Part shown: positions 3,564-46,256 of the stretch, piece by piece
Layout: each line of letters starts with the position of its first letter
Position numbering within the stretch: the first letter of the stretch is position 1
IMG/VR virus record: IMGVR_UViG_3300042308_001616
Coordinates: 184,752 to 248,751 of that record
Direction: 5' to 3' (one strand)
DNA: 64,000 nucleotides
The notes under the pieces: generated by a model
What the model saw: only the letters and a program-made list of their open reading frames with translations
What the model was told of the DNA's origin: nothing
Databases searched by the model: none
Translations under genes and position numbers: made by a program

Positions 3564-4454
3564 ATGGCAAAAACATCAAGAAGAGAGGTCAAAGCCCCAA
3601 GTGCGTGGGTCGTGGCACCAAAAGACAGAGGACGTAAGTCTGTAAAATTCGACACAAAGTCGGATACCGAGACCAAAGGAAAGGTCTATCTAAACGACGG
3701 CGAGGAGTTTCAAATAGAACTCCACAATCCACTCACCGAGTGTGCCTTAGCCGACATCAAACTAAATGGAAACTCTATATCGAAAGGAGGACTTGTACTG
3801 AGACCAGGTGAGAGGTTCTATCTCGACTGTTTTATCGATGACAAAAAGAAGTTTATTTTCAGTACCTACGAGGTTGAAGACACCGACGATTCGATGGAAT
3901 CAATCGCTAAGAATGGACTATTAGAAGTATTCTTCTACAAAGAATCTGCAAAGTCAATCGATAGAAGTAGGTTGAATAAATTGATTGTGGAGAGACACTA
4001 CTATCCGTATCACACCGGTTGGCAAACGACGCCATGGTACACAACACCGAACATTTACTGTAATACAGGAAACATAGGAAGTAGTAACGCGACTTACACA
4101 TCGAGTTCCATAAACCTTAACAACCTAACAGGTTCTCTGACCACGGGTAACAACACAATACCGATAAACTCCATCATAGAGACTGGAAGGATCGAGAAAG
4201 GTGAAAATTCGGAGCAAAAGTTCGACGAGGTGGATATGGACTTCGACAACTTCTACATTTCATCAACCGTATTGGAACTCTTACCTGAGAGTAGAAGACC
4301 AATTGAGACAAAGGAGTTAAAAGAAAAACCCGAACAGAAACAACAGATTGACGTGATTGAGATGATAAAGAAACTCGCCGATCTAAGGGACGCCGGAATA
4401 CTAACCGAAGAAGAGTTCTCAGAGAAGAAGTCAGAATTACTCGGAAGAATTTAA
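3564..4454 (+). CDS. Hypothetical protein with C-terminal SHOCT domain
   Basis: C-terminus IKKLADLRDAGILTEEEFSEKKSELL is SHOCT-like; likely start MAKTS at 3564. Confidence 0.7.
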   Translation: MAKTSRREVKAPSAWVVAPKDRGRKSVKFDTKSDTETKGKVYLNDGEEFQIELHNPLTECALADIKLNGNSISKGGLVLRPGERFYLDCFIDDKKKFIFSTYEVEDTDDSMESIAKNGLLEVFFYKESAKSIDRSRLNKLIVERHYYPYHTGWQTTPWYTTPNIYCNTGNIGSSNATYTSSSINLNNLTGSLTTGNNTIPINSIIETGRIEKGENSEQKFDEVDMDFDNFYISSTVLELLPESRRPIETKELKEKPEQKQQIDVIEMIKKLADLRDAGILTEEEFSEKKSELLGRI

Positions 4455-4549
4455 AAAAAGAGGTCATTAGTGACCTCTTTTTTTTATTTATAACACATTT
4501 ATATTCAGTTTTTTAAACAAAAACACGCTAAATTACATATATAATATGT

Positions 4550-6016
4550 ATGAAGTTTAGATACGATCCAGATACCGAGGAAATAGTAGCATCAGATGCT
4601 ACCCGTATAGAGTACCACCAGATGCAGCTTTGGCTCACAAGACACGTAAAAGGATGGAAATTTCAACCTGCCGTTAAGATGGGTGTTTGGGACGGAAAGA
4701 AGTCTTACTTCAAAAACGGACGTATAAGTTTAGGTCTCTGGAGAGAAGCACTTTATGGATGTAGAGAGATTGAAGTACCATTCATAATAGAAAATAAAGA
4801 AGATTTTCCTATAAACCGTGATGTTACACCGGAAAAGGTTCAGGACTTCTGTAAAGAATTTTTCAAAGACCATAAAGTACGTACTAAAGATGGTCTATGG
4901 ATTCCATTTATGCCTTATGATCATCAGATAGAAGCAGCATACAGGATACTAAAGAATAGATATTGTATGGCAGAGGTTGCTACTTCTGGTGGTAAATCTC
5001 TAATCATTTCAATAGTTATGTTCTACACACTAAAGAATATAAAGGCCGATGCGAAATTTTTAATAATCGTTCCATCAATTACATTAGTTACTCAGTTCTA
5101 CGACAATATCGTAGAATATAATCTTGGTATAAACCGGATTGAAAAGATGAGACAGGAAAATACTGACGAAATTCCACCAGAGTGTTGTCAGGTAAGAGTA
5201 GAAGAAGTAATGTCAGAAAGACCTAGGAAATATTCTGGTACTGATAACGCCAATGTTTATATTGGAACATATCAATCACTTGAGAAGTGGCCTAAAGAGT
5301 TTTTTCATCAATTTCACACAGTTGCCACAGATGAAGCACATGGTGCAAAGGCTAAGACAATAACGACTATACTTGAACACACCTTTGGAAGAGCTTATTG
5401 TCGTTTTGGTGTATCGGGAACTTTTCCAGGTGACGACACATGCGAAATACTTACAATACAATCAGTATTGGGTCCTAAAATAACTGAGGTAAGTGCAGAT
5501 GAACTCAAAAAGAAGGGTATAATAACACCAATGGACATAAAGGTTGTTTTGATGAACCACGGTGATCCACATTTCTACGAACAGGTCAAATATATAAGAA
5601 AGCATGGTGACGGAAAATCAGCATTTGATTTTGAAAAGAAGTATGCACACCAGTCCGATAAACGACTCGCTTTCATTAGTAAGCTTGTTTCTAAGTGTGA
5701 AAATAACACACTACTACTTTTTCACACAATTGAGAATGGTCAGAGAATACTAAACAGATTACAATCTGATATAAAAGATAAAGAGTTCTTTTATATCGAT
5801 GGTGAAGTAAGTGGTAAAAAGAGAGAAGAGATAAAGAAGCAGATGGAGATAACCAAGACTAAAGTAGAATACACAATACTTAATTTTGGAGACTACGAAG
5901 TCGAGGTTAAGTCAGACTACCAGATATTACTTTCTGATGGTAGTTATAAATCTGCAAAAGACATAACAACCAATGATGATATAGATGATAACTTTATCAA
6001 AAAACTAAGAAAATAG
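4550..6016 (+). CDS. uvsW: UvsW-like SF2 DNA helicase, N-terminal fragment (motifs I-IV)
   Basis: PYDHQIEA, ATSGGKS, IIVPSITLVTQ, DEAH, GVSGT, LLLFHTIENG, YIDGEVSGKKREEI; lacks motifs V-VI. Confidence 0.9.
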   Translation: MKFRYDPDTEEIVASDATRIEYHQMQLWLTRHVKGWKFQPAVKMGVWDGKKSYFKNGRISLGLWREALYGCREIEVPFIIENKEDFPINRDVTPEKVQDFCKEFFKDHKVRTKDGLWIPFMPYDHQIEAAYRILKNRYCMAEVATSGGKSLIISIVMFYTLKNIKADAKFLIIVPSITLVTQFYDNIVEYNLGINRIEKMRQENTDEIPPECCQVRVEEVMSERPRKYSGTDNANVYIGTYQSLEKWPKEFFHQFHTVATDEAHGAKAKTITTILEHTFGRAYCRFGVSGTFPGDDTCEILTIQSVLGPKITEVSADELKKKGIITPMDIKVVLMNHGDPHFYEQVKYIRKHGDGKSAFDFEKKYAHQSDKRLAFISKLVSKCENNTLLLFHTIENGQRILNRLQSDIKDKEFFYIDGEVSGKKREEIKKQMEITKTKVEYTILNFGDYEVEVKSDYQILLSDGSYKSAKDITTNDDIDDNFIKKLRK

Positions 6017-6081
6017 ACAAAAGTTCTCATCTCTCGTCACTACGGGTGTTTGTGTGAATAATATATACAATAAAAAATAAA

Positions 6082-7035
6082 ATGGATTATAACTTTATAA
6101 AATGTGAATTCGAATCTAAACACAATATAGACGATGTAAATCAACTTGATGAGTATATAAATTTCCTATTAGACTACAAACTAGATAAAACTGACGAGTA
6201 TACTGAAAAGCACCACATATTACCATACGCAACTTTTCCAGAATATAAAAACGAAAAATGGAACATTGTAGAACTAAAATATGAAGACCACAAACAAGCA
6301 CACCTTATATTATACAAATCAATAAACATAAGAGTATACCAAAGAACTTTGAATTTTATGTTACCACAATTCAAAAACAAAGATTTATTATCAAAAGCAA
6401 CCAAAATGGGGTGGATCAATCTAAAAAACAACAAAGATAAATACGAAAAATGGAGAAATGGTAGATCAAACCATATGAAGAGTTTGGGAAGTCAGGAGCA
6501 AAGAAGGAGAACCAATATATTCTGGGGAAACATAACCGAAGAACAATACACTATGTTTTCGAACAAAATGAAAGAATACTGGACAGAGGATAAAAGAATA
6601 GAAAAATCCAAACAGATGAACGAGTATTACTCCAATCCTGAAAATATAAACAAAAAAAGTATAGAGAGCCAGGAAAGATGGGACTCTATGACCAAAGAAG
6701 AACGTGAAAAATTCACAGTTAAGATGACGGCTATAAACAAAGACGAAGGTAAGAGACGAAAGGCCGGTGACAAAATAAAAAATCTTTGGAAGAGTGAAGA
6801 CTATTTGGAAAAAATGAAAAATAGACCTCACCGAAAGGGTACTATGTTGAAAATCATAAAACCTAACGGGGAAGAGATTGTTGTGGAATCAATGAACGTT
6901 TTCCAGAAAGAATACGATTTCTCTCTATATCTAATAAGAAAGTACAGAGATACCGGTACAGAGATACCAGAAATTGACTTGAAGAGTGATCTTTCACTAC
7001 TAAAATGTAAAATCGAAACAATAACCAATGGCTAG
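6082..7035 (+). CDS. Free-standing HNH homing endonuclease (Mob-like)
   Basis: YTEKHHILP...NIVEL...DHKQAHLIL HNH motif followed by basic helical repeats; has its own AATATATA box at 6060-6067. Confidence 0.8.
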   Translation: MDYNFIKCEFESKHNIDDVNQLDEYINFLLDYKLDKTDEYTEKHHILPYATFPEYKNEKWNIVELKYEDHKQAHLILYKSINIRVYQRTLNFMLPQFKNKDLLSKATKMGWINLKNNKDKYEKWRNGRSNHMKSLGSQEQRRRTNIFWGNITEEQYTMFSNKMKEYWTEDKRIEKSKQMNEYYSNPENINKKSIESQERWDSMTKEEREKFTVKMTAINKDEGKRRKAGDKIKNLWKSEDYLEKMKNRPHRKGTMLKIIKPNGEEIVVESMNVFQKEYDFSLYLIRKYRDTGTEIPEIDLKSDLSLLKCKIETITNG

Positions 7036-7370
7036 GATAGTAGACAAAAGAGAAGAAATAAGAGAAGAAGGGGCGACTAAGGTTTTAGTCGCCTCTTACT
7101 GAGGACGGTACACTATCGACAGGTGTGAGTATAAACGCCATTTTTAATGTGATATTTGCAGACTCTTTCAAATCAGAACAAATTATTATACAATCAATTG
7201 GAAGGGGTCTAAGACTGCACTCCGAGAAACAGAAGGTAAATATATTCGATTTGGTTGATGTTTTCGATAAGGATGATCTTAACAACGCATTATATAGACA
7301 CTACAAAGAACGTGAAGGATTCTATGTGAAAAGAAAATATCCATTCAAAATAATAAAAGTGCAGCTGTGA
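7028..7370 (+). CDS. uvsW: UvsW C-terminal fragment (motifs V-VI), interrupted by a 7-nt gap containing TGA
   Basis: ATG 7028 gives MARIVDKREEIREEGATKVLVASY then stop; the +1 frame continues GTLSTGVSINAIFNVIFADSFKSEQIIIQSIGRGLR. Confidence 0.8.
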
Positions 7371-7392
7371 GGCAATAATGAATATATAGGTT

Positions 7393-10300
7393 ATGCCAAT
7401 AAACTTATCACCACAGGAGTATTTTTTGAATTTTTTAAATTCAAACGAAGAAGCACTAAAAATCTACAAAAAAGCGGAGGTCCTAAAGTATGTAAGACTA
7501 CGAACTATTGGTGAGAAAGAACTTACATTAGATCAACAATCAGATGAAAACTGGGACGGTAAAAACGATATTTTCGCATATCTTGTAATAATTGACCAAT
7601 TTTTTTCAAAGGCAGATGTACATATTCTTACTTTCGTACCTGAATTTGAAAATTTTACGGTTGTTGAAATCAAATTTAGTCCAACTATTACACCTGCAGA
7701 TATAACAAAATCTGTTAAGGTACATTACAAATCAGAGAAAGGTAATCATATAAATCTATTAATAGCAGATCCGGAATATCAACTACAAGTATTAAAGGAT
7801 AAGGCTAAACGTGACGGATATAATGTTATACAGGATCCGTGGATACCTAACGTAGTTAATCCAAAAGAGCAAAAATCTGTTGATAAATCAAGTGATAAAA
7901 TAGCAGATAGTAAGAATGATGATGATGGTTTCAAAACAGTTAACGAACCAGAAATATACGATTATGCATCACTAAAGGAACCAAAAGTAAAAGCGGATGA
8001 AATAACTGGAGAAATTTGGTTAGAAAAAGTTAGTGGACCCGGAGATATAATAGGAGATGGAAGAGAAATTATAGATTCATTGGGTAGTCAACGTGGTGTA
8101 AAGTTTGAAGATTTACAATTCACAGAACCAGGTGACTATGTCATAAGAGTATTGAGTGATTCTCCTAACCTTACACCAACACAATTCAATATAACAGTAT
8201 TACCAGAACCAGTTATAATACCACAAGAAAAGGTTGTTGAAGAAGAACAGGAAGAAGTAGTTTTAGGTGCTAGACCAATGATAACACAGATATTTCCTCC
8301 AACATTAAAACTCAGACCAATTACCGTAAAATATGAAGAAGAAACTGGAACAGCAACGGTTGTTACTGCGGATGGTATGGGTATATTCCCGACGGTTTAT
8401 TACAATGGTGTTCCAATAAGCCACGGTGATATACTAAGTTTCCGACTCTATCACGATGGTGTTGTTCCTAAGTGTAAAGTTTCTTTCATAGATTCTGCCA
8501 ATCTTATAAAAGATTTAGGTGTTCCCAAAGATGATATGACATTTGACATTTTTATAAATTCTAAGACGGTTAGTCTTAAGTCAATACATCTTAACTTCAA
8601 ATTAGAAAAACATAGGGAGTCTATGTTTGGTGCAAAATATACATTCAATGGGACTTTGAATATACCTTCCGAACATGATAAAAAATTCAAATTATACGAA
8701 CAACAGAGTCCAACATACGAACAGATGACATCTTATAATGCAATTACAAACATATGTAAAGATTTAGGAATTGGTTTTAATTCAAACATATCTGATACAG
8801 ATGATAAGATGACTTGGGTATTCAATGGTGATAAGGGATATCAGGTAATAGAACATTTAGTTAACAAATCATACATATCGGATAGTTCATTTATGGGTGC
8901 TTATATAGACTACTACTATTGTATGAATTATGTCGATGTTGAAAAAGAGTGTAGAAGAGACAACTCTAATGATTCAGGAATCGAGACTGGTGGTGTAGGT
9001 TCAAATTCTTCTGATAATGAACAAGTTCAAATGTTGCTACACAACGAAGTCTCTGCAAATAAAAGTAGTTTTTTCTTTCTTTCGGAACCAAAAATAAAAC
9101 ATAATAGTACTGACAAAAACCTAATTAAAGGAGTTAGGACAAAAGTTAAGTTTTATGATAATAAAACTAAGAAATTTGAGGTTTATGATATAGAGGGTAC
9201 AACCAGTGATGGTACAGAAACTGAAATACTAAAGGGTTCACCCAATGATAAAAAAGGTTTTTTCTCAAATACGACAACGAGAATGTTGGGTAAGATGGAT
9301 ACCGAAAACGTACACAAAAATTATCTTTATGCAGAGGAACTCAACAGGAGAAATTTAGACGAATTGGGTAATATAGAGATGATTGTAAAGCTACCTACTA
9401 TAAATCTAAATTATTACATATATCAGAAGACCCGAGTAGTACTTGTAAATCAAAGAACTTCACCAACCAATCAGTCCAGGTTTAGATACGAGTACACCGG
9501 TGATTGGACTATATCCGCGATAGAGTTTAAAATGACTAAAGAGGGAGGTATGAAAACTTTCTATCAAGAGATGAGGTTAATACGTAAAGAACTTGGTATG
9601 AAACCAAAGGATCAAATGGAAAGGTTAGAACCAAAAACTGGTTCTGAGGAAAATGTTCCTAATAGTGTGAATCCAATCGAGAATTTCCCTAATGCTGCTT
9701 ACCAACCTAGCGAGGTCTACAGGTTCAAAGACGAGAATGGTATGGAATGGATTGTAAGTATCATATATCCTAATAGTGATGGTGAAACAATGGAAGTTTA
9801 TATGGTATCAGATGATTTGTATGAGGATACTAATGCCATCAAACCTATACCGACATTCGATGATGAGAATATGATACCTGATGGTGCATCCGAACTTAGT
9901 AACGAATCACCTACAAATAGTAGTATTAATAAAGATGAGATAATACCAATTAAACTAATTCTTGGTGCAGTTGTACCTAAACCGACAAAGTCATTCGATG
10001 AACTAAAAAATAAACAACTTATTGAGAACGATGTCAAAAACGTTTCTGGATACATAGAACTTCAGGAAATTGGTGCAACTGATGAATCTAAACGTTTCAG
10101 GTTATATGCAGTTCTTAATGGATTTACTACAGATGACTTTTATACAAAAATGACTGGAATTAATCCACCCAATTACATAACGACAAGTACCGAATGGTTG
10201 ACTAAAGCAGATTTTAATAAAGATAAGCCAGAGCTAGATAAAATTGAAGAACAACTCAATGATGAATTAATACTTAGATATTCATACCAGGAATTGGAAA

Positions 10301-41083: not shown

Positions 41084-41168
41084 GGAGAGTTGGCAGAGTG
41101 GTCGATTGCGGCAGTCTTGAAAACTGTTGAACCGCGAGGTTCCGTAGGTTCGAATCCTACACTCTCCG
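41084..41168 (+). tRNA. tRNA-Ser(TGA)
   Basis: Cloverleaf; gcagt-ct-TGA-aa-actgt; long variable arm. Confidence 0.92.
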
Positions 41169-41211
41169 CAAAATAAAAATAAAAAATAGTAGGATATACG
41201 AAACTTTAACG

Positions 41212-41219
41212 TATATTTG
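41212..41219 (+). promoter_or_regulatory. Bacteroidota sigma-A -7 box for tRNA operon 1
   Basis: TATATTTG matches TAnnTTTG; a TATATA late-type box follows at ~41252. Confidence 0.65.
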
Positions 41220-41267
41220 TCTTATAAAACAAAAAGGGAAGTAAAAAACTTTATATATACACTTACA

Positions 41268-41378
41268 ATGAAAGCAACAAATACAAATATGACAATCGTG
41301 AGAAACTTAATGGTGAATATTACATTATGTAATATTAGACCAAACGAGGGTTCCTGTCTATTTGTGAATGTCGCATAA
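41268..41378 (+). CDS. Putative attenuator leader peptide 1 (36 aa)
   Basis: MKATNTNMTIVRNLMVNITLCNIRPNEGSCLFVNVA; contains gagggttc (41346-41353), complementary to the terminator 5' arm. Confidence 0.8.
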   Translation: MKATNTNMTIVRNLMVNITLCNIRPNEGSCLFVNVA

Positions 41379-41400
41379 ACATTTATATAAAAGAAACTTG

Positions 41401-41433
41401 AACCCTCAGTCAAAAACTGAGGGTTTTTTGTTT
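41401..41433 (+). terminator. Attenuator terminator 1
   Basis: aaccctcagt-caaaa-actgagggtt followed by ttttgttt, directly before the tRNAs. Confidence 0.85.
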
Positions 41434-41446
41434 AACATAAAAATAC

Positions 41447-41518
41447 GGACGGGTAGCTCAGAGGCAGAGCAAAATCCTGTTAAGATTGAGGTCGAGATAT
41501 CGTAATTCTCCCCGTCCG
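41447..41518 (+). tRNA. tRNA-Asn(GTT), atypical T-loop
   Basis: aatc-ct-GTT-aa-gatt; ggacggg/cccgtcc acceptor stem. Confidence 0.8.
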
Positions 41519-41530
41519 CAAAAATAAAAT

Positions 41531-41618
41531 GGACTTGTAGCTGATAAGGTTTAGCTGGTGACTGTTAATCACTGAATGAAAAATTGAAATAAAGTAGGTT
41601 CGAATCCTACCTGGTCCG
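41531..41618 (+). tRNA. tRNA-Asn(GTT) with enlarged variable region
   Basis: gtga-ct-GTT-aa-tcac; gtagg-ttcgaat-cctac. Confidence 0.7.
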
Positions 41619-41625
41619 CAAAAAT

Positions 41626-41698
41626 GGTTCTATGATGTAACTGAATAGCATAAGCCCCTTCTAAGGGTTTCGTTGGGGTTTGAATCCCTGTAGAACTA
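41626..41698 (+). tRNA. tRNA-Arg(TCT)
   Basis: agccc-ct-TCT-aa-gggtt. Confidence 0.8.
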
Positions 41699-41704
41699 CA
41701 AAAT

Positions 41705-41777
41705 AGTTGATTAGCTCAATTGGTAGAGCACCGATCTGATACGTCGGAGGTAGTGGGATCGTAACCCGCATCAACTA
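41705..41777 (+). tRNA. tRNA-Ile(GAT)
   Basis: ccgat-ct-GAT-ac-gtcgg. Confidence 0.85.
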
Positions 41778-41787
41778 CTAAAAAAAT

Positions 41788-41858
41788 GCTTCCTTCGTAT
41801 AGAGGTATTATTCTGGATTTGTAACCCAGTGACGCCAGTTCGATCCTGGCAGGAAGCT
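41788..41858 (+). tRNA. tRNA-Thr(TGT)
   Basis: ctgga-tt-TGT-aa-cccag. Confidence 0.85.
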
Positions 41859-41865
41859 CGAAAAT

Positions 41866-41937
41866 GTTAGTGTGTCCGAATGGCTTAGGTAACCAGCTGC
41901 AACCTGGTATATGGGGGTTCAAGTCCCTCCACTAACT
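41866..41937 (+). tRNA. tRNA-Cys(GCA)
   Basis: accag-ct-GCA-ac-ctggt; U73 discriminator. Confidence 0.88.
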
Positions 41938-41946
41938 CAAACAAAC

Positions 41947-42016
41947 GCCGCGGCTTAGTGGAAAAGGATCGACCCTCATATGGTTGATTAAGTGGTTTCG
42001 AACACCATACGCGGTA
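41947..42016 (+). tRNA. tRNA-Met(CAT), atypical D-arm
   Basis: cgacc-ct-CAT-at-ggttg; gtggt-ttcgaac-accat. Confidence 0.6.
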
Positions 42017-42038
42017 CTAACTAAAAAAAATAAAAAAT

Positions 42039-42197
42039 ATGAAATTCGAAGACTACTTCAAAAGCAAGTTTCCTTTCCTGAAAGAAAGCAAGGAAAGCCA
42101 CACAATCGACATCGATTCAGACACACTCATATACCTGGTACAGGACTTCATCGACGGGGAAAGAAGCAGAGAAGACCAATCGAAGGCATTCGAGTAA
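42039..42197 (+). CDS. Small hypothetical protein (52 aa) inside the tRNA operon
   Basis: MKFEDYFKSKFPFLKES...KAFE; A-rich leader. Confidence 0.55.
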   Translation: MKFEDYFKSKFPFLKESKESHTIDIDSDTLIYLVQDFIDGERSREDQSKAFE

Positions 42198-42204
42198 AAG
42201 AAAC

Positions 42205-42277
42205 AGGGGATTAGCTCAATCGGGAGAGCGTTAGACTTACATTCTAAAGGTAGCGGGATCGTAACCCGCATTCCCTA
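42205..42277 (+). tRNA. tRNA-Val(TAC)
   Basis: ttaga-ct-TAC-at-tctaa. Confidence 0.85.
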
Positions 42278-42281
42278 CTAG

Positions 42282-42366
42282 GCACCAGTGGTGAAACTGG
42301 AGATACACGCTGCGCTTAAACCGCAGTCCTAAATACGGGTTGAGGGTTCGAGTCCCTCCTGGTGCA
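42282..42366 (+). tRNA. tRNA-Leu(TAA)
   Basis: ctgcg-ct-TAA-ac-cgcag; long variable arm. Confidence 0.9.
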
Positions 42367-42400
42367 CAAAAAAAATAGAACAAAAAAAAATAGAAAACAC

Positions 42401-42462
42401 TTTGATATCAAAAATAAATACCTATCTTTGATGAACGATAACAACAAAAGGTCTTTGAAATA
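42401..42462 (+). promoter_or_regulatory. Sigma-A promoter (-33 TTTG, -7 TATCTTTG) followed by a boxA-like element
   Basis: TTTG 42401, TATCTTTG 42423, ggtctttgaaa 42450. Confidence 0.7.
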
Positions 42463-42568
42463 CTAAAATAAAAACTTAAACGAACAAAGTAAAAAACTCG
42501 TACCGACTCTTTACTGAGAGGTACATGTATATTAGAAGGCTGGTAAAGATCCAGAATGTTCGTTTTAT

Positions 42569-42649
42569 GCACTTGTGGTGGAATGGTAGACACGTATGCC
42601 TTAGGAGCATATGTCGAAAGGCGTGCGAGTTCGAGTCTCGCCAAGTGTA
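42569..42649 (+). tRNA. tRNA-Leu(TAG)
   Basis: tatgc-ct-TAG-ga-gcata. Confidence 0.9.
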
Positions 42650-42780
42650 CAAACCCTGCTTTGAAGTAAACAGATAACAATAACTATAGAGTAGTTTAGT
42701 TCATGTAAAAATAAAAGGAAGTCATGCCACCTTTGTTGTTATAATCCACAGTCAAGAGTGGAGTTGTTTATAGAGAAGAT

Positions 42781-42854
<74 letters not shown>

Positions 42855-42935
42855 CAAATAAGTAGAGAGAACCAGTAGCACGCGGCTCGGTCCAGTATCA
42901 GTCATAATGCTAGAATACGTCATACTCTACTTAAC

Positions 42936-43008
42936 GGAGGTGAGGTCAAACGGTTAAGATGTCTGCCTGTCACGCAGTTCGGAGCGGGTTCAACTCCCGT
43001 CACTTCCG
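42936..43008 (+). tRNA. tRNA-Asp(GTC)
   Basis: ctgc-ct-GTC-ac-gcag. Confidence 0.88.
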
Positions 43009-43126
43009 CGCTAGCAAGTATTTGACGAAATCTTTAATAAGTCAAAATACTTTGAAAACACCCAAGTGGTTAAAGAACCTTCAACCTGGTAAACGGTGGA
43101 GAGAGGTACCCAAGCTCTCATTTTTT

Positions 43127-43200
43127 TCTCCCTTAGCTCAGTTGGTTAGAGCATCTGACTGTTAATCAGAGGGTCTCAGGTTCAAGTCCTGAAGGGAGAG
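43127..43200 (+). tRNA. tRNA-Asn(GTT)
   Basis: tctga-ct-GTT-aa-tcaga. Confidence 0.93.
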
Positions 43201-43206
43201 CTAAAT

Positions 43207-43278
43207 GGTTCCGTGGTGAAAGGGATATCACTAGAGATTTCTAATCTCTCGTTCCTGGTTCGAATCCAGGCGGAATCA
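43207..43278 (+). tRNA. tRNA-Arg(TCT)
   Basis: agaga-tt-TCT-aa-tctct. Confidence 0.88.
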
Positions 43279-43284
43279 CAAAAT

Positions 43285-43357
43285 GCCGTCATAGCTCAGT
43301 TGGTAGAGCGTTACCTTGGTATGGTAAAGGTCATCGGTTCGAGCCCGATTGGTGGCT
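43285..43357 (+). tRNA. tRNA-Thr(GGT)
   Basis: ttacc-tt-GGT-at-ggtaa. Confidence 0.9.
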
Positions 43358-43377
43358 CTGAAAAAAGTTCTAAAAAG

Positions 43378-43432
43378 TTTGGTGAAACAAAAAGAATCAC
43401 TAACTTTGTAAAACAAAAGAGATCTTTGACAT
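43378..43432 (+). promoter_or_regulatory. Sigma-A promoter followed by a boxA-like element
   Basis: TTTG 43378, TAACTTTG 43401, gatctttgacat 43421. Confidence 0.7.
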
Positions 43433-43452
43433 AATAACAAAATAACAAAAAC

Positions 43453-43524
43453 GGCACCATAGTTCAAGGGATAGAATAGAAGTTTCCTAAACTTTAGATC
43501 CAGGTTCGAATCCTGGTGGAGTCA
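43453..43524 (+). tRNA. tRNA-Arg(CCT)
   Basis: gaagt-tt-CCT-aa-acttt. Confidence 0.88.
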
Positions 43525-43535
43525 CTAAAAAAAGA

Positions 43536-43588
43536 TTTGGTAGATTCAAAAACTATACTTATCTTTGAAAACAAAACGTTCATTGAAT
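43536..43588 (+). promoter_or_regulatory. Sigma-A promoter followed by a boxA-like element
   Basis: TTTG 43536, TATCTTTG 43560, cgttcattgaat 43577. Confidence 0.7.
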
Positions 43589-43594
43589 AAAAAA

Positions 43595-43676
43595 GGCCTT
43601 GTGTTGGAAATGGTAGACAAGCACGTTTGAGGGGCGTGTGCCGAATGGCGTATGGGTTCAAGTCCCATCAAGGTCA
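43595..43676 (+). tRNA. tRNA-Leu(GAG)
   Basis: cacgt-tt-GAG-gg-gcgtg. Confidence 0.9.
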
Positions 43677-43724
43677 CAAAAGAATGCTCAGGCAACCCCC
43701 TGGTAAAAGCATTCGAAAATATAT

Positions 43725-43796
43725 TGCGGGATGGGGGAGTGGTCACCCCGCTGGGCTCATAACCCAGAGACATTGGTTCGAATCCTTTTCCCGCTA
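43725..43796 (+). tRNA. Initiator tRNA-fMet(CAT)
   Basis: ctggg-ct-CAT-aa-cccag (three G:C pairs); unpaired 1:72. Confidence 0.8.
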
Positions 43797-43903
43797 CAAA
43801 AATCCAGGCAACCCCCTGGTAGAAACAGAATGCTCAGGCAACCCCCTGGTAAAAAGCATTCAAAAAAATCAACCCGAAAGGCACAGGTTCGAATATATAG
43901 TAT

Positions 43904-44539
43904 ATGAGAAAATGTGAAAATTGTGAAACTGAACACACGGGTGAGTACAAATCTGGTAGATTTTGTTCTTTGAAATGTTCGAAATCGTTTAGCACCAAAT
44001 GCAAACGAAATGAGATAAACGAAGCAGTATCTGTAAAACTTACAGGAAGGGGTAATCCTCCAGTATCAAAAGAGTGTAAAAATTGTAACAATACATTCGA
44101 AGTTGAGTGGAGAAAAAGAAAGCAACTATTCTGTGGCAGATCGTGTACAACATCGTATAAAAATAAAACGATGAATATGGCAAGTCTGGGAGGTCTCAAA
44201 AGCGCAACTTCACAATCAAGAAGAAGCAAAAATGAGATTTTATTTTACGAAATGTGCTTAGAAAAGTTCCCCGATTCATTGGCAAACGAGCCAATTTTTG
44301 ATGGATGGGACGGAGATATAATCATTCCTTCTAAAAAAGTTGCAATACTTTGGAATGGTGTTTGGCACTACAAACAGATTTCTAAATCACAAAGTCTGAA
44401 ACAAGTACAGACACGTGATAAAATAAAAATCGAAAAGATTACACAATACGGATTTGTTCCGTATATTGTAAAAGATTTAGGAAAACACAATCCAACCTTC
44501 GTAAAAGAAGAGTTTGATAAGTTTCTAAAAGCTCTTTGA
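43904..44539 (+). CDS. Zinc-finger plus PD-(D/E)xK/Vsr-like endonuclease, probable free-standing homing endonuclease
   Basis: CENC...FCSLKC and CKNC...FCGRSC; SKNE, DGDII, ILWNGVWHY, RDKIK. Confidence 0.7.
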   Translation: MRKCENCETEHTGEYKSGRFCSLKCSKSFSTKCKRNEINEAVSVKLTGRGNPPVSKECKNCNNTFEVEWRKRKQLFCGRSCTTSYKNKTMNMASLGGLKSATSQSRRSKNEILFYEMCLEKFPDSLANEPIFDGWDGDIIIPSKKVAILWNGVWHYKQISKSQSLKQVQTRDKIKIEKITQYGFVPYIVKDLGKHNPTFVKEEFDKFLKAL

Positions 44540-44549
44540 AATGTTATAT

Positions 44550-44632
44550 TGGAAGGTGGCAGAGTGGTTAAATGCGTTTGACTGTAAATCAAATCTCGTG
44601 AGAGTACGGGGGTTCAAATCCCTCCCTTCCAA
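44550..44632 (+). tRNA. tRNA-Tyr(GTA)
   Basis: tttga-ct-GTA-aa-tcaaa; long variable arm. Confidence 0.9.
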
Positions 44633-44682
44633 CAAAGCTCAGGACTAATTACCCTGTAGCCTGGATGGTTCGAAACATCCGA

Positions 44683-44789
44683 TTTGATATGGTGTACTGG
44701 GCACGACACCCGCCGCTGAGGTTCGAATCCTCAGGTTCGGAATGGTTACCACGGGAGTAAGATTGGGTTCGATCCCCTTTATCACACCA
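44683..44789 (+). ncRNA. tRNA-like RNA with anticodon loop replaced by a structured insert
   Basis: tgata/tatca acceptor ending CCA, gtgt/acac D-stem, ggg-ttcgatc-ccc T-arm. Confidence 0.4.
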
Positions 44790-44885
44790 AAAGACCAGAC
44801 AACCCTCTGGCAGCAACGCTAACACAGCACAATGCGGGCTCATACCTGCGGCGTAGTGTGACGGTCAGGAGAGACTGACAACTTT

Positions 44886-44962
44886 GGGGCTATAGCTCAG
44901 TTGGCTAGAGTACTTGCCTGGCAGGCAAGGGGTCGCCGGTTCGAGCCCGGCTAGCTCCACCA
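44886..44962 (+). tRNA. tRNA-Ala(GGC)
   Basis: cttgc-ct-GGC-ag-gcaag; G3:U70; encoded CCA. Confidence 0.93.
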
Positions 44963-44996
44963 ACAAAACATTCTTACAACGGTAAGATATATATAC

Positions 44997-45067
44997 ACGG
45001 GTATAGTGAAATGGTATCATGCCGGTCTCCAAAACCGTTGTTCCGAGTTCGAATCTTGGTACCCGTG
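44997..45067 (+). tRNA. tRNA-Trp(CCA)
   Basis: cggt-ct-CCA-aa-accg. Confidence 0.88.
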
Positions 45068-45127
45068 CTAGATTAGTAATCGATAGGATGGAGGGAATAG
45101 CCATGTGTCGACAATGTTAATCTGTAA

Positions 45128-45201
45128 GGTCTTGTAACTCAGTTGGTTAGAGTGCGTCGCTCATAACGATGAAGTCGGGGGTTCGAGTCCCTCCTGGACC
45201 A
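45128..45201 (+). tRNA. tRNA with CAT anticodon (Ile2 or elongator Met)
   Basis: cgtcg-ct-CAT-aa-cgatg. Confidence 0.85.
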
Positions 45202-45323
45202 CACCAGTATCTGGCACTCACGATGTTGAGTGCCATTTACATTTAAGTGAGAATTAGGATAAATATCAAAAAAATGTCTATATTTACAAAACAAAGAGTA
45301 ACAAACTTTATATATAACTAATA

Positions 45324-45422
45324 ATGAAAACTTTTAACACAAATATCGCAGTATTAAACATCCCGCAGGATCAGGATCAACCTAAGTTACTTGGGACTAA
45401 CTGTATATTGTCAAAAAGTTAA
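45324..45422 (+). CDS. Putative attenuator leader peptide 2 (32 aa)
   Basis: MKTFNTNIAVLNIPQDQDQPKLLGTNCILSKS; actaactg (45396-45403) is complementary to the terminator 5' arm. Confidence 0.8.
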   Translation: MKTFNTNIAVLNIPQDQDQPKLLGTNCILSKS

Positions 45423-45440
45423 ATAAAAAGCTTAAATGAT

Positions 45441-45478
45441 AAACCCAGTTAGTAACTACTAACTGGGTTTTTTCGTTT
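45441..45478 (+). terminator. Attenuator terminator 2
   Basis: aaacccagttagt-aact-actaactgggttt followed by tttcgttt, directly before tRNA-Gln. Confidence 0.85.
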
Positions 45479-45484
45479 ATATAA

Positions 45485-45557
45485 TGTCCCGTGGTGTAAT
45501 TGGCAACACGTCTGATTTTGGTTCAGAAGAGTCCAGGTTCGACCCCTGGCGGGACAA
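45485..45557 (+). tRNA. tRNA-Gln(TTG)
   Basis: tctga-tt-TTG-gt-tcaga. Confidence 0.92.
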
Positions 45558-45570
45558 CAAAAAAGTTATT

Positions 45571-45642
45571 GGTTCTGTCGTCCAATGGTAGGATAGCCCG
45601 TTGTCTGCGGGATGGTTGCGGGTTCGAGTCCCGTCAGAACCG
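45571..45642 (+). tRNA. tRNA-Asp(GTC)
   Basis: cccg-tt-GTC-tg-cggg; G73. Confidence 0.85.
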
Positions 45643-45653
45643 CTAAAATATAA

Positions 45654-45726
45654 CTAGGTGTAGCTCAGATGGTAGAGCGGGGAGTTTGGGACTCTCAGGC
45701 CGCAGGTTCGACCCCTGTCACTTAGA
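45654..45726 (+). tRNA. tRNA-Pro(TGG)
   Basis: ggag-tt-TGG-ga-ctct; C1:G72, A73. Confidence 0.88.
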
Positions 45727-45732
45727 CAAAAA

Positions 45733-46169
45733 CGAGTAGTAGAGGAGTGGTTTATCTCGGTTTTTTTTAATATAATAAAATATATTTAATATATAATAAA
45801 AATAAAAAATTGTAATATGAAGAATATTAAAACATTTGGTAGTTTCATAAATGAAAGTGATGAAAATATTGATGACTATGAAATTACAACAAACAATGAA
45901 ATAGAAGGAAGGCCTTGTGTAGATTTCAATCCAACAGAATTACATCCAAATGATATAATTTATAGAAAATTAGTTGATGTTGTCAATTATCGTTCAAATT
46001 GGTATAAACATAAGAATAACATACCTAATATTGATGATTTATCTAGCTATTCTAAACCAGAAGGATTTAAAGTCATTTCAAATGATGGTAAAATTCTTAA
46101 ATTAGAGGATAAAGGCTTTATTAATAAAGTGTAAGCATCAGCACGTGAGTTCGATTCCCACCTTCTCGA
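45733..46169 (+). pseudogene. tRNA (Pro-like) split by an inserted gene
   Basis: 5' half cgagtag-ta-gagg...tctc at 45733-45760; 3' half gtgag-ttcgatt-cccac-cttctcg-a at 46135-46169. Confidence 0.65.
45817..46134 (+). CDS. Inserted hypothetical protein with capsid-targeting-like N-terminus
   Basis: Starts MKNIKTFGSFINES; own AATATATA box at 45788. Confidence 0.7.
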   Translation: MKNIKTFGSFINESDENIDDYEITTNNEIEGRPCVDFNPTELHPNDIIYRKLVDVVNYRSNWYKHKNNIPNIDDLSSYSKPEGFKVISNDGKILKLEDKGFINKV

Positions 46170-46175
46170 CAATAC

Positions 46176-46248
46176 GGATGTGAGGTCAAACGGTTAAGAT
46201 GTCTGCCTGTCACGCAGTTCGGAGCGGGTTCAACTCCCGTCACGTCCG
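46176..46248 (+). tRNA. tRNA-Asp(GTC), near-duplicate of the copy at 42936
   Basis: Identical apart from one acceptor-stem pair. Confidence 0.88.
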
Positions 46249-46256
46249 CTAATAGA

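Follow-up and report, generated by a model that had tools for sequence, protein, structure and literature searches.

A short stop-containing gap, most likely bypassed by ribosomes, in the UvsW-like helicase gene of a large freshwater phage

In a large freshwater phage, a homing-endonuclease cassette splits the gene for a UvsW-like helicase and leaves a 7-base, stop-containing gap in a conserved motif. Counting this one, I identified 29 cassette lineages in viral and metagenome contigs, and the 28 related ones keep such a gap (4 to 17 bases) with intact coding on both sides. Although no protein, ribosome-profiling or RNA evidence exists, the comparative data suggest that ribosomes most likely hop over the gap, as at the 50-base gap of phage T4 gene 60. 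The stretch of DNA analysed here, referred to as the window, comprises 64,000 nucleotides from IMG/VR record IMGVR_UViG_3300042308_001616 (positions 184,752 to 248,751), and all features described below lie on its plus strand.

The helicase gene in the window is in pieces. The first open reading frame (4550-6016, 488 aa) carries the UvsW-like N-terminal domain, RecA-like domain 1 and part of domain 2 (Pfam ResIII 2e-15 and DEAD 2e-13, with UvsW_N weak at 0.0015, below the Pfam cut-off), and its residues 1-468 are 69-70% identical to uninterrupted helicases of huge uncultured phages. It ends in a cassette-encoded C-terminal extension of about 46 aa plus stop (5876-6016, EYTILNFGDY...KKLRK), which is conserved as protein in the relatives L006, L009, L023, L026 and L061 (L numbers denote the helicase alleles and lineages compared here), but has no Pfam match. 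This is followed by a free-standing Mob-family HNH homing endonuclease gene (6082-7035, 317 aa), which matches PHROG HNH and homing-endonuclease families (HNH hit at 8e-18), is 26-37% identical to MobD-like/MobE-like genes of T4-like phages, and has full-length homologues at the same place in L100, L103, L101, L078, L104, L084 and L108; no other copies of this HNH were found in the window. An ATG at 7028, overlapping the HNH reading frame by 8 nt, opens a 24-codon reading frame (7028-7099) that consists of a unique part (MARIVDKREEIREEG) and a replacement copy of the deleted host segment (ATKVLVASY), and ends in the Tyr codon UAC at 7097-7099. The coding gap TGAGGAC (7100-7106) starts with the stop codon UGA (7100-7102), after which motif V and the remainder of the helicase (GTLSTG..., 87 codons plus TGA, motifs V and VI to the natural C-terminus) continue in the +1 frame from 7107 to 7370. 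This last part has PHROG helicase hits and matches T4 UvsW (2OCA) residues 406-457 at 1.3e-6, with G406 aligning onto the first residue after the gap.

Aligned with the uninterrupted helicases of the huge phages LR756502, LR745206 and LR756504, the window has exactly 7 extra bases between the Tyr/Phe codon and the Gly codon. These bases are not an assembly slip, even though only Logan contigs and not raw reads were compared: the source-sample contig matches 4400-7174 with no difference, a diverged contig from another study spans 7001-7107 without gaps, and a third study (run X6) contains a near-identical phage in which the HNH reading frame is cleanly deleted (6006-7007), but which still carries 7008-7600 without gaps. 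Among GenBank phages no near-identical record was found by megablast.

The borders of the cassette can be placed by comparison with uninterrupted relatives. DNA homology to the uninterrupted relative L005 ends at about position 5854, which puts the 5' edge of the cassette at about 5855-5875, and homology to L005 and L001 resumes exactly at 7107, the first base after the gap; about 33 nt of host sequence is replaced, and host homology stops 33-50 nt before the junction. Cassette alleles are scattered over the helicase tree, with at least 8 gains or losses forced by well-supported branches.

All 29 lineages follow an invariant grammar: a Tyr codon (TAY) at the end of a 24-codon reading frame, a stop (TGA, TAA or TAG), a gap of 4, 6, 7, 9 or 17 nt, and then GGN ACN and the rest of GTLSTG. 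The last triplet of the gap is GAC, GAT, AAC, TAC, TAT, TAG or TAA, and is never more than one mismatch away from a Tyr codon, the per-triplet chance of which is 0.30. However, only about 8 of 29 lineages have a fully cognate triplet (TAC/TAT) at this position, and the GAC of the window (7104-7106) mismatches tRNA-Tyr at codon position 1. In about half the lineages, including the window, GGT ACA moreover holds a perfectly cognate but out-of-frame TAC (7109-7111) just past the proposed landing site, although a hop to this codon would give the wrong frame and a stop within 12 codons.

The codons after the gap are under strong purifying selection. Codons 1-6 vary only synonymously, bar one Ser-to-Gly change, and dN/dS is 0.078 over the first 40 codons among gapped lineages, with dS about 1.4. 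Within cassette-only clades dN/dS is 0.02-0.09 while the gap length changes among 4, 7, 9 and 17 nt; for example, the window and L110 differ at 36 nt but only 1 aa. The short N-terminal extension is also translated, as dN/dS is 0.11 for its codons 2-12, which lie outside the hairpin described below and outside the search pattern. TGA is a genuine stop in this phage, since it ends this same gene where relatives also end; all three stop codons occur after the Tyr and long reading frames read normally in code 11, so that an alternative genetic code was rejected.

A 13-bp hairpin with a 4-nt loop (7068-7080/7085-7097) lies directly upstream, its 3' arm ending on the first base of the Tyr codon. 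It is present in the minimum-free-energy fold (z = -3.1), is 97.4% paired over 27 lineages, with three pairs showing changes on both sides, and has a mean folding energy of -19.0 kcal/mol in cassette alleles against -3.1 in the same stretch of 27 uninterrupted alleles. However, 25 of the 29 lineages were found with a pattern that fixed parts of both hairpin arms, so the ubiquity of the hairpin is partly due to ascertainment, although a protein-based search and a tail-based search found no gapped allele without it. The hairpin also persists in the gapless allele L044, and its location 5' of the take-off codon is unlike that of the conserved take-off stem-loop of gene 60, in the relatives of which 5' stem-loops are not conserved.

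Taken together, I consider it probable that the region is a mobile homing-endonuclease cassette of the T4 MobA type, lodged just before motif V, and that the helicase is made as two polypeptides. In the proposed route to the second, ribosomes start at ATG 7028, translate 24 codons and stall with peptidyl-tRNA-Tyr on UAC and UGA in the A site; the tRNA then lets go of its codon, the ribosome slides 7 nt, the tRNA re-pairs with the near-cognate GAC, and decoding resumes at GGT 7107, which would give ...KVLVASY-GTLSTGVSINAIF... and the uninterrupted motif V. The 3' arm of the hairpin lies inside the ribosome at take-off, and its re-folding behind the ribosome is proposed to pull the mRNA forward. 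The hop itself, the role of the hairpin and the efficiency are inferred; unprogrammed short hops in E. coli appear to run at about 1% or less, and a high efficiency is assumed here.

The first-pass annotation, which proposed a cassette like T4 gene 39-mobA-gene 60 with a short bypass or +1 frameshift, is supported in its core. Of these two options, +1 frameshifting cannot be the general mechanism, whereas bypass fits all eleven gap types. The annotation further suggested that the gap makes the allele immune to its own endonuclease, which may be so, but although all 8 alleles with a full HNH gene have the gap and the only 2 gapless alleles lack an intact HNH, two alleles are too few for this association to be informative. 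The late promoter it assigned to the HNH gene was not found, as no TATAAATA lies in 6017-6081 and a sigma-70 scan gives only a 9/12 match there. The small cctc/gagg stem that it noted around the stop exists in the window but is not conserved in relatives, and neither is ACUG/CGGU in the fold. Its statement that there is no room for a group I ribozyme is right in outcome, as Rfam finds nothing and the intervening tails are protein-coding.

Alternatively, the window allele could be read by a programmed +1 frameshift at UAC-UGA, giving VASY-ED-GTLSTG with two extra residues in motif V, but this seems unlikely. In the window the +1 frame is indeed open across the gap, as it is for the 4-nt gap and most 7-nt gaps, and a stop in the A site is a classic +1 stimulator. 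However, four of the eleven gap types are in-frame or carry a stop in the +1 frame: TGAGTAG (in two unrelated lineages), TAGTAA, TGAGGCTAA and the 17-nt gap carry stops that block both +1 frameshifting and readthrough, yet keep intact, constrained downstream reading frames. One mechanism has to cover shifts of +1, 0 and +2. L026 and L084 naturally have a +1-frame stop in place of GAG GAC. The inserted residues would also differ by lineage (D, ED, EN, EY, KD) inside a motif that shows no insertion or deletion in any uninterrupted relative. In contrast to the prfB (RF2) frameshift, which likewise has a stop codon in the A site, UAC cannot re-pair at +1 (ACU) and no Shine-Dalgarno-like element sits 3 nt upstream.

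Less likely still, no recoding may occur at all, the selfish cassette having knocked out the helicase C-terminus so recently that the downstream frame only looks conserved. Homing elements can spread despite a fitness cost, uvsW is apparently dispensable in T4, and no product has been observed. However, cassette-bearing clades have diverged to saturation at synonymous sites (dS above 1) and have changed gap type while keeping constrained downstream reading frames of 86-89 codons; every contig long enough to show it (23 lineages) has an intact downstream frame ending at the normal C-terminus, and the strict Tyr-stop-near-Tyr grammar would have no reason to persist. A three-piece helicase, in which the 24-residue peptide terminates at UGA and a third polypeptide starts independently, is also improbable. 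A GTG at codon 7 after the gap (7125 in the window) is present in the window and in 13 of 27 lineages, and nine lineages have a TTG six codons upstream in the landing frame, but neither start is conserved. In 14 of 27 lineages the first canonical start is at codon 17-58, which would delete motif V and often motif VI, whereas codons 1-6 are held by purifying selection in all lineages and are thus translated.

Removal of the gap or the whole intervening region from the RNA by an intron, ribozyme or editing is very unlikely. Homing endonuclease genes often ride in group I introns and a strong conserved hairpin abuts the gap, but Rfam finds no intron or ribozyme in 5700-7300 even at E = 10, both tails are under protein-level selection, L009 reads through the tails as one reading frame, and no self-splicing element of 4-17 nt is known. 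An assembly or sequencing artefact can practically be dismissed, as the same 7 bases appear in contigs from at least three studies and homologous gaps appear in 28 further lineages from unrelated projects.

The architecture corresponds to that of the MobA element of T4 gene 39-mobA-gene 60 as described by Manning and Atkins (bioRxiv 10.1101/2022.08.31.505936, which also cites the MobA self-protection experiments). In both, a Mob-family HNH gene splits a conserved replication or repair enzyme gene, the upstream piece gains an in-frame C-terminal tail of about 45 aa, and the downstream piece gains an N-terminal tail that overlaps the HNH frame out of frame (8 nt here, 8-32 nt there) and ends in a replacement copy of the deleted host segment; a stop codon follows the take-off codon, and the element ends at the landing codon. 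Natural derivatives have lost the HNH, or lost the gap, or have re-fused (L006/X6, L044 and L009 here), and cassette-bearing and cassette-free alleles are interleaved on the host tree. However, the gene interrupted here encodes a UvsW-like SF2 helicase, whereas MobA elements were reported exclusively in the gene for the topoisomerase large subunit. The gap is 4-17 nt against 20-50 nt, take-off is at Tyr and not at Gly or Asp, most landing triplets are near-cognate rather than matched, and the N-terminal tail is 24 aa and not about 45. A gap of this size cannot hold a take-off stem-loop, the covarying hairpin lying 5' of take-off instead, and GAG, present in most gaps but not all, abuts the landing triplet, unlike the mini Shine-Dalgarno element about 6 nt before landing. 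The tails show no BLASTP similarity to those of T4 gp39 and gp60.

Other systems share part of this layout. In Aeromonas phage Aeh1, nrdA is split by the Mob-type HNH gene mobE into two fragments with added tails that reassemble into an active enzyme, but no coding gap or recoding is reported there. Short tRNA hops over stop codons in E. coli and the yeast mitochondrial byp elements likewise involve peptidyl-tRNA that detaches at a poorly decoded A-site codon and re-pairs a few to tens of bases downstream, with non-identical landing codons tolerated. The former appear to be unprogrammed, low-level events in reporters and byps are 27-55 nt long, while here a natural gene in many phage lineages would depend on the event.

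Efficient programmed bypassing has so far rested on T4 gene 60 and its topoisomerase relatives, the cassette of which the 2022 survey calls unique and exclusive to that gene. A second cassette in another gene and with unrelated tails would show that bypass is a general trick of homing elements, and would give a natural series of gap lengths and landing triplets; it bears directly on the current proposal that mRNA pairing behind the ribosome drives forward movement (bioRxiv 10.1101/2024.12.09.627546). It is about as likely as not that Mob-type homing elements have, independently of T4 gene 60, evolved a minimal bypass device, consisting of a stop codon, a 4-17 nt gap ending in a near-Tyr triplet and a 13-bp hairpin whose re-folding drives an efficient forward micro-hop. 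In this view, ribosome hopping would be a recurrent solution by which homing cassettes break their own target site inside an invariant protein motif, and the rapid change in gap length would reflect an arms race with nuclease specificity.

The gene also resembles the 'fractured genes' in which a split intein is combined with a free-standing endonuclease (Dassa et al. 2009, PMC2677866), and the same helicase is fractured in this way at motif II in the relatives L048-L053. The tail in the window has a faint Hint-like look, but it has no Hint match even at E = 10, whereas the tail of L048 scores 5.5e-10, and there is no nucleophile at the junction and no terminal Asn, so that reassembly must be non-covalent. 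In practice, gene callers will break or mis-annotate these helicases in large-phage genomes.

In the stretch 4550-7370 the reading of the first-pass annotation, which had described a uvsW gene split by an HNH gene with a 7-nt stop-containing gap, is confirmed. An open reading frame of 488 aa (4550-6016) carries ResIII/DEAD helicase domains and a weak UvsW N-terminal match, and is followed by an open reading frame of 317 aa (6082-7035) that matches PHROG HNH and homing-endonuclease families and is 26-37% identical to MobD-like and MobE-like genes of T4-like phages. ATG 7028 overlaps the HNH stop by 8 nt and opens a 24-codon open reading frame ending in KVLVASY, with UAC at 7097-7099 and UGA at 7100-7102. 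From 7107, in the +1 frame, GTLSTGVSINAIF and the residues that follow it run to the TGA at 7368-7370, and T4 UvsW (PDB 2OCA) aligns from its residue G406 onto the very first residue after the gap. The nearest database relatives are the 630-735 kb uncultured phages LR756502, LR745206 and LR756504, whose helicase is one uninterrupted open reading frame reading KVLIAS[YF]GTLSTG, and the DNA alignment shows exactly 7 extra bases in the window.

The window belongs to the 249-kb IMG/VR contig 3300042308_001616, and Logan contigs from four lake and river runs were aligned to positions 4400-7600. The contig from the source sample is identical over 4400-7174, and a diverged contig from a second study crosses 7001-7107 without gaps, although all of these are assemblies and not raw reads. 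A third study, a river metagenome (run X6, record 29), contains a near-identical phage in which 6006-7007, the HNH open reading frame, is cleanly missing as a 1002-nt deletion. This phage keeps the split, both tails and the gap; 7008-7600, including the 7 bases, is present without gaps.

A protein-guided scan of viral contigs gave 60 loci; most of the helicases are uninterrupted, and several are interrupted at the same point. I then performed three pattern scans, for the hairpin described below in viral contigs and in metagenome contigs, and for the start of the 24-codon open reading frame, independent of the hairpin, in viral contigs. Together these give 29 distinct cassette lineages (loci and lineages carry the prefix L). 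Every one has a 24-codon open reading frame of the form M-A-[RK]-I-...-KVLVASY, a Tyr codon (TAT or TAC), an immediately following stop (TGA in most, TAA in L101, TAG in L071/L085), a short gap, and then GGN ACN and the rest of GTLSTG. Wherever the contig is long enough (23 lineages), an intact open reading frame of 86-89 codons runs to the normal C-terminus. Counted from the stop through the last base before GGN, there are eleven gap types: TGAC (4 nt), TAGTAA (6 nt), TGAGGAC, TGAGGAT, TGAGAAC, TGAGTAC, TGAGTAT, TGAGTAG and TAAGGAC (7 nt), TGAGGCTAA (9 nt) and TGAGCCCCAGGGAGTAA (17 nt). The required shift is thus +1, 0 or +2, depending on the lineage.

The downstream frame is translated from its first codon. 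The six codons of GTLSTG vary almost only synonymously, including TCN/AGY serine switches, and dN/dS over the first 40 codons is 0.078 at a dS of about 1.4. The 24-codon open reading frame is translated as well, as dN/dS is 0.11 for its codons 2-12, which lie outside the hairpin and outside the search pattern.

The first-pass annotation had left open whether the gap is bypassed or read by a +1 frameshift. However, a +1 shift reads a stop in TGAGTAG, which occurs in two unrelated lineages, TAGTAA and TGAGGCTAA are in frame with two stops each, and the 17-nt gap needs +2 and ends in TAA, so that only skipping the gap serves all lineages. Alternatively, the downstream conservation could be a signal inherited from recently intact genes, but this is not the case. 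The window's own clade consists of the window, L110, L100, L077, L076, L090 and L061, all of which bear the cassette and share a signature (GRGLRLH) seen in no uninterrupted allele sampled. Within this clade synonymous sites are saturated while proteins barely differ (window versus L110, 36 nt and 1 aa; L110 versus L100, 32 nt and 0 aa), and yet the gap is 7, 7, 9, 4, 4, 7 and 17 nt, respectively; two other cassette clades give dN/dS of 0.01-0.09. Interestingly, the 72 nt before the gap (7028-7099) differ at only 3 positions between the window and L110, whereas the 216 nt after it (7107-7322) differ at 36 positions with 1 amino-acid change, which suggests either extra RNA-level constraint on the tail or recent exchange of the cassette between phages. 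Independent initiation after the gap finds little support, as no start codon is conserved there and in 14 of 27 lineages the first ATG, GTG or TTG is at codon 17-58. Finally, the relatives make an artefact untenable.

The last three bases of the gap are GAC, GAT, AAC, TAC, TAT, TAG or TAA, in which the middle base is always A and there is never more than one mismatch to a Tyr codon. By base composition a random triplet meets this with p = 0.30, and as the seven triplets are not independent, this is suggestive only. The simplest history is that the cassette ends in TAY TGAG and was joined to the recipient's own Tyr codon, which gives matched take-off and landing codons, as in gene 60, that later drifted within what a P-site tRNA-Tyr tolerates. 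However, the near-cognate landing triplets and a cognate, out-of-frame TAC just beyond the landing site are unexplained. An array of 26 tRNA genes in the window (41084-46249) includes tRNA-Tyr(GTA) at 44550-44633, with an ordinary 7-nt anticodon loop, and the phage thus supplies the tRNA proposed to hop.

Positions 7068-7080 pair with 7085-7097 in a hairpin of 13 bp with a 4-nt loop (z = -3.1), the last pair of which uses the first base of the take-off codon. Over 27 lineages 97.4% of cells are paired, whereas all slid controls fall to 39-58%, and three pairs change on both sides (A-U to G-C eight times; G-C to A-U and to U-A; G-C to A-U). The same 33-nt stretch folds at -19.0 +/- 2.1 kcal/mol in cassette alleles, against -3.1 +/- 1.6 in 27 uninterrupted alleles. 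The hairpin-pattern scans fixed parts of both arms, and its ubiquity is therefore partly ascertainment; however, the protein-based and tail-based searches found no gapped allele without the hairpin, and the compensatory A-U pairs of L113 and L115 came from the unbiased search. When Tyr is in the P site the 3' arm lies inside the ribosome, whereas the 5' arm and loop have just emerged. I infer that re-folding pulls the mRNA 5'-ward and so moves the ribosome forward by a few to about 13 nt, although the survival of the hairpin in the gapless allele L044 remains unexplained. This range matches the observed gap lengths, and the inference also matches the idea proposed for gene 60 that pairing of exiting mRNA drives forward bypassing.

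Manning and Atkins (bioRxiv 10.1101/2022.08.31.505936) define the T4 MobA element as an in-frame C-terminal tail of about 44 aa on gene 39, the HNH gene, and an N-terminal tail on gene 60 that overlaps the HNH open reading frame by 8-32 nt and contains a replacement copy of the 55-75 nt of host sequence deleted on insertion, followed by the gap, with the element ending at the landing codon. They also describe derivatives that lost the HNH, lost the gap, or re-fused. The window matches each structural point: homology to uninterrupted relatives stops about 33-50 nt before the junction and resumes at the first base after the gap, the upstream fragment has a conserved tail of about 46 aa, and the overlap with the HNH open reading frame is 8 nt. 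All three derivative types exist as well. The HNH is lost in L006, in L110 (97% identical helicase, the same layout as the X6 phage, gap TGAGAAC), in the X6 phage itself and in others; the gap is lost, with a decayed HNH, in L044; and L009 (4001-5820) reads the upstream tail, a linker and the downstream tail as a single open reading frame, with no HNH gene and no gap, apparently a secondary re-fusion that leaves an insertion of about 58 aa before motif V. On a helicase tree cassette alleles are interleaved with uninterrupted ones, and well-supported branches force at least 8 gains or losses.

However, the host gene is a helicase, whereas MobA elements were found only in the topoisomerase gene, the tails have no similarity to those of T4, the gap is 4-17 nt against 20-50 nt, take-off is at Tyr, and there is a 5' hairpin and no take-off stem-loop. 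I therefore regard the element as working like the MobA bypass element, but as a variant and not as a demonstrated member. The proposed immunity to the cassette's own HNH enzyme rests only on analogy; all 8 alleles with a full-length HNH are gapped while both gapless alleles lack an intact HNH, which is too few to test. The parallel with T4 39-mobA-60 drawn in the first-pass annotation is supported and sharpened, in that bypass, and not a +1 shift, is the mechanism that fits all alleles. Although no product has been seen, programmed bypass appears probable on this comparative evidence, and the cassette is a strong candidate for a second, minimal family of programmed translational bypassing.

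The first-pass annotation had also assigned the HNH gene its own late promoter. The T4 late-promoter consensus TATAAATA occurs 17 times in the window against 8.2 expected, with 0 of 100 shuffles reaching 17, but none precedes the HNH gene. A strong terminator-like hairpin (14 bp followed by a T run) lies at 4453-4484, between the upstream gene and the helicase start, where contigs of several unrelated organisms pile up in the runs examined.

The same helicase gene is interrupted at other sites in relatives. In L048 (4001-6856), and also in L049-L053, L056 and L061, it is broken inside motif II (TDE|C) by a split intein, of which the N-half matches Pfam Hint at 5.5e-10 and the C-half ends in VSN|C, with a free-standing TnsA-like endonuclease open reading frame between the halves. 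This is the 'fractured gene' layout of Dassa et al. 2009 (PMC2677866), and L061 carries both this insertion and the gap cassette. A third insertion site, at reference residues 206-217, is found in L060 (3914-6604) and L057, where a 296-aa DUF723/zinc-ribbon endonuclease open reading frame sits between fragments that carry added tails, and there is no coding gap.
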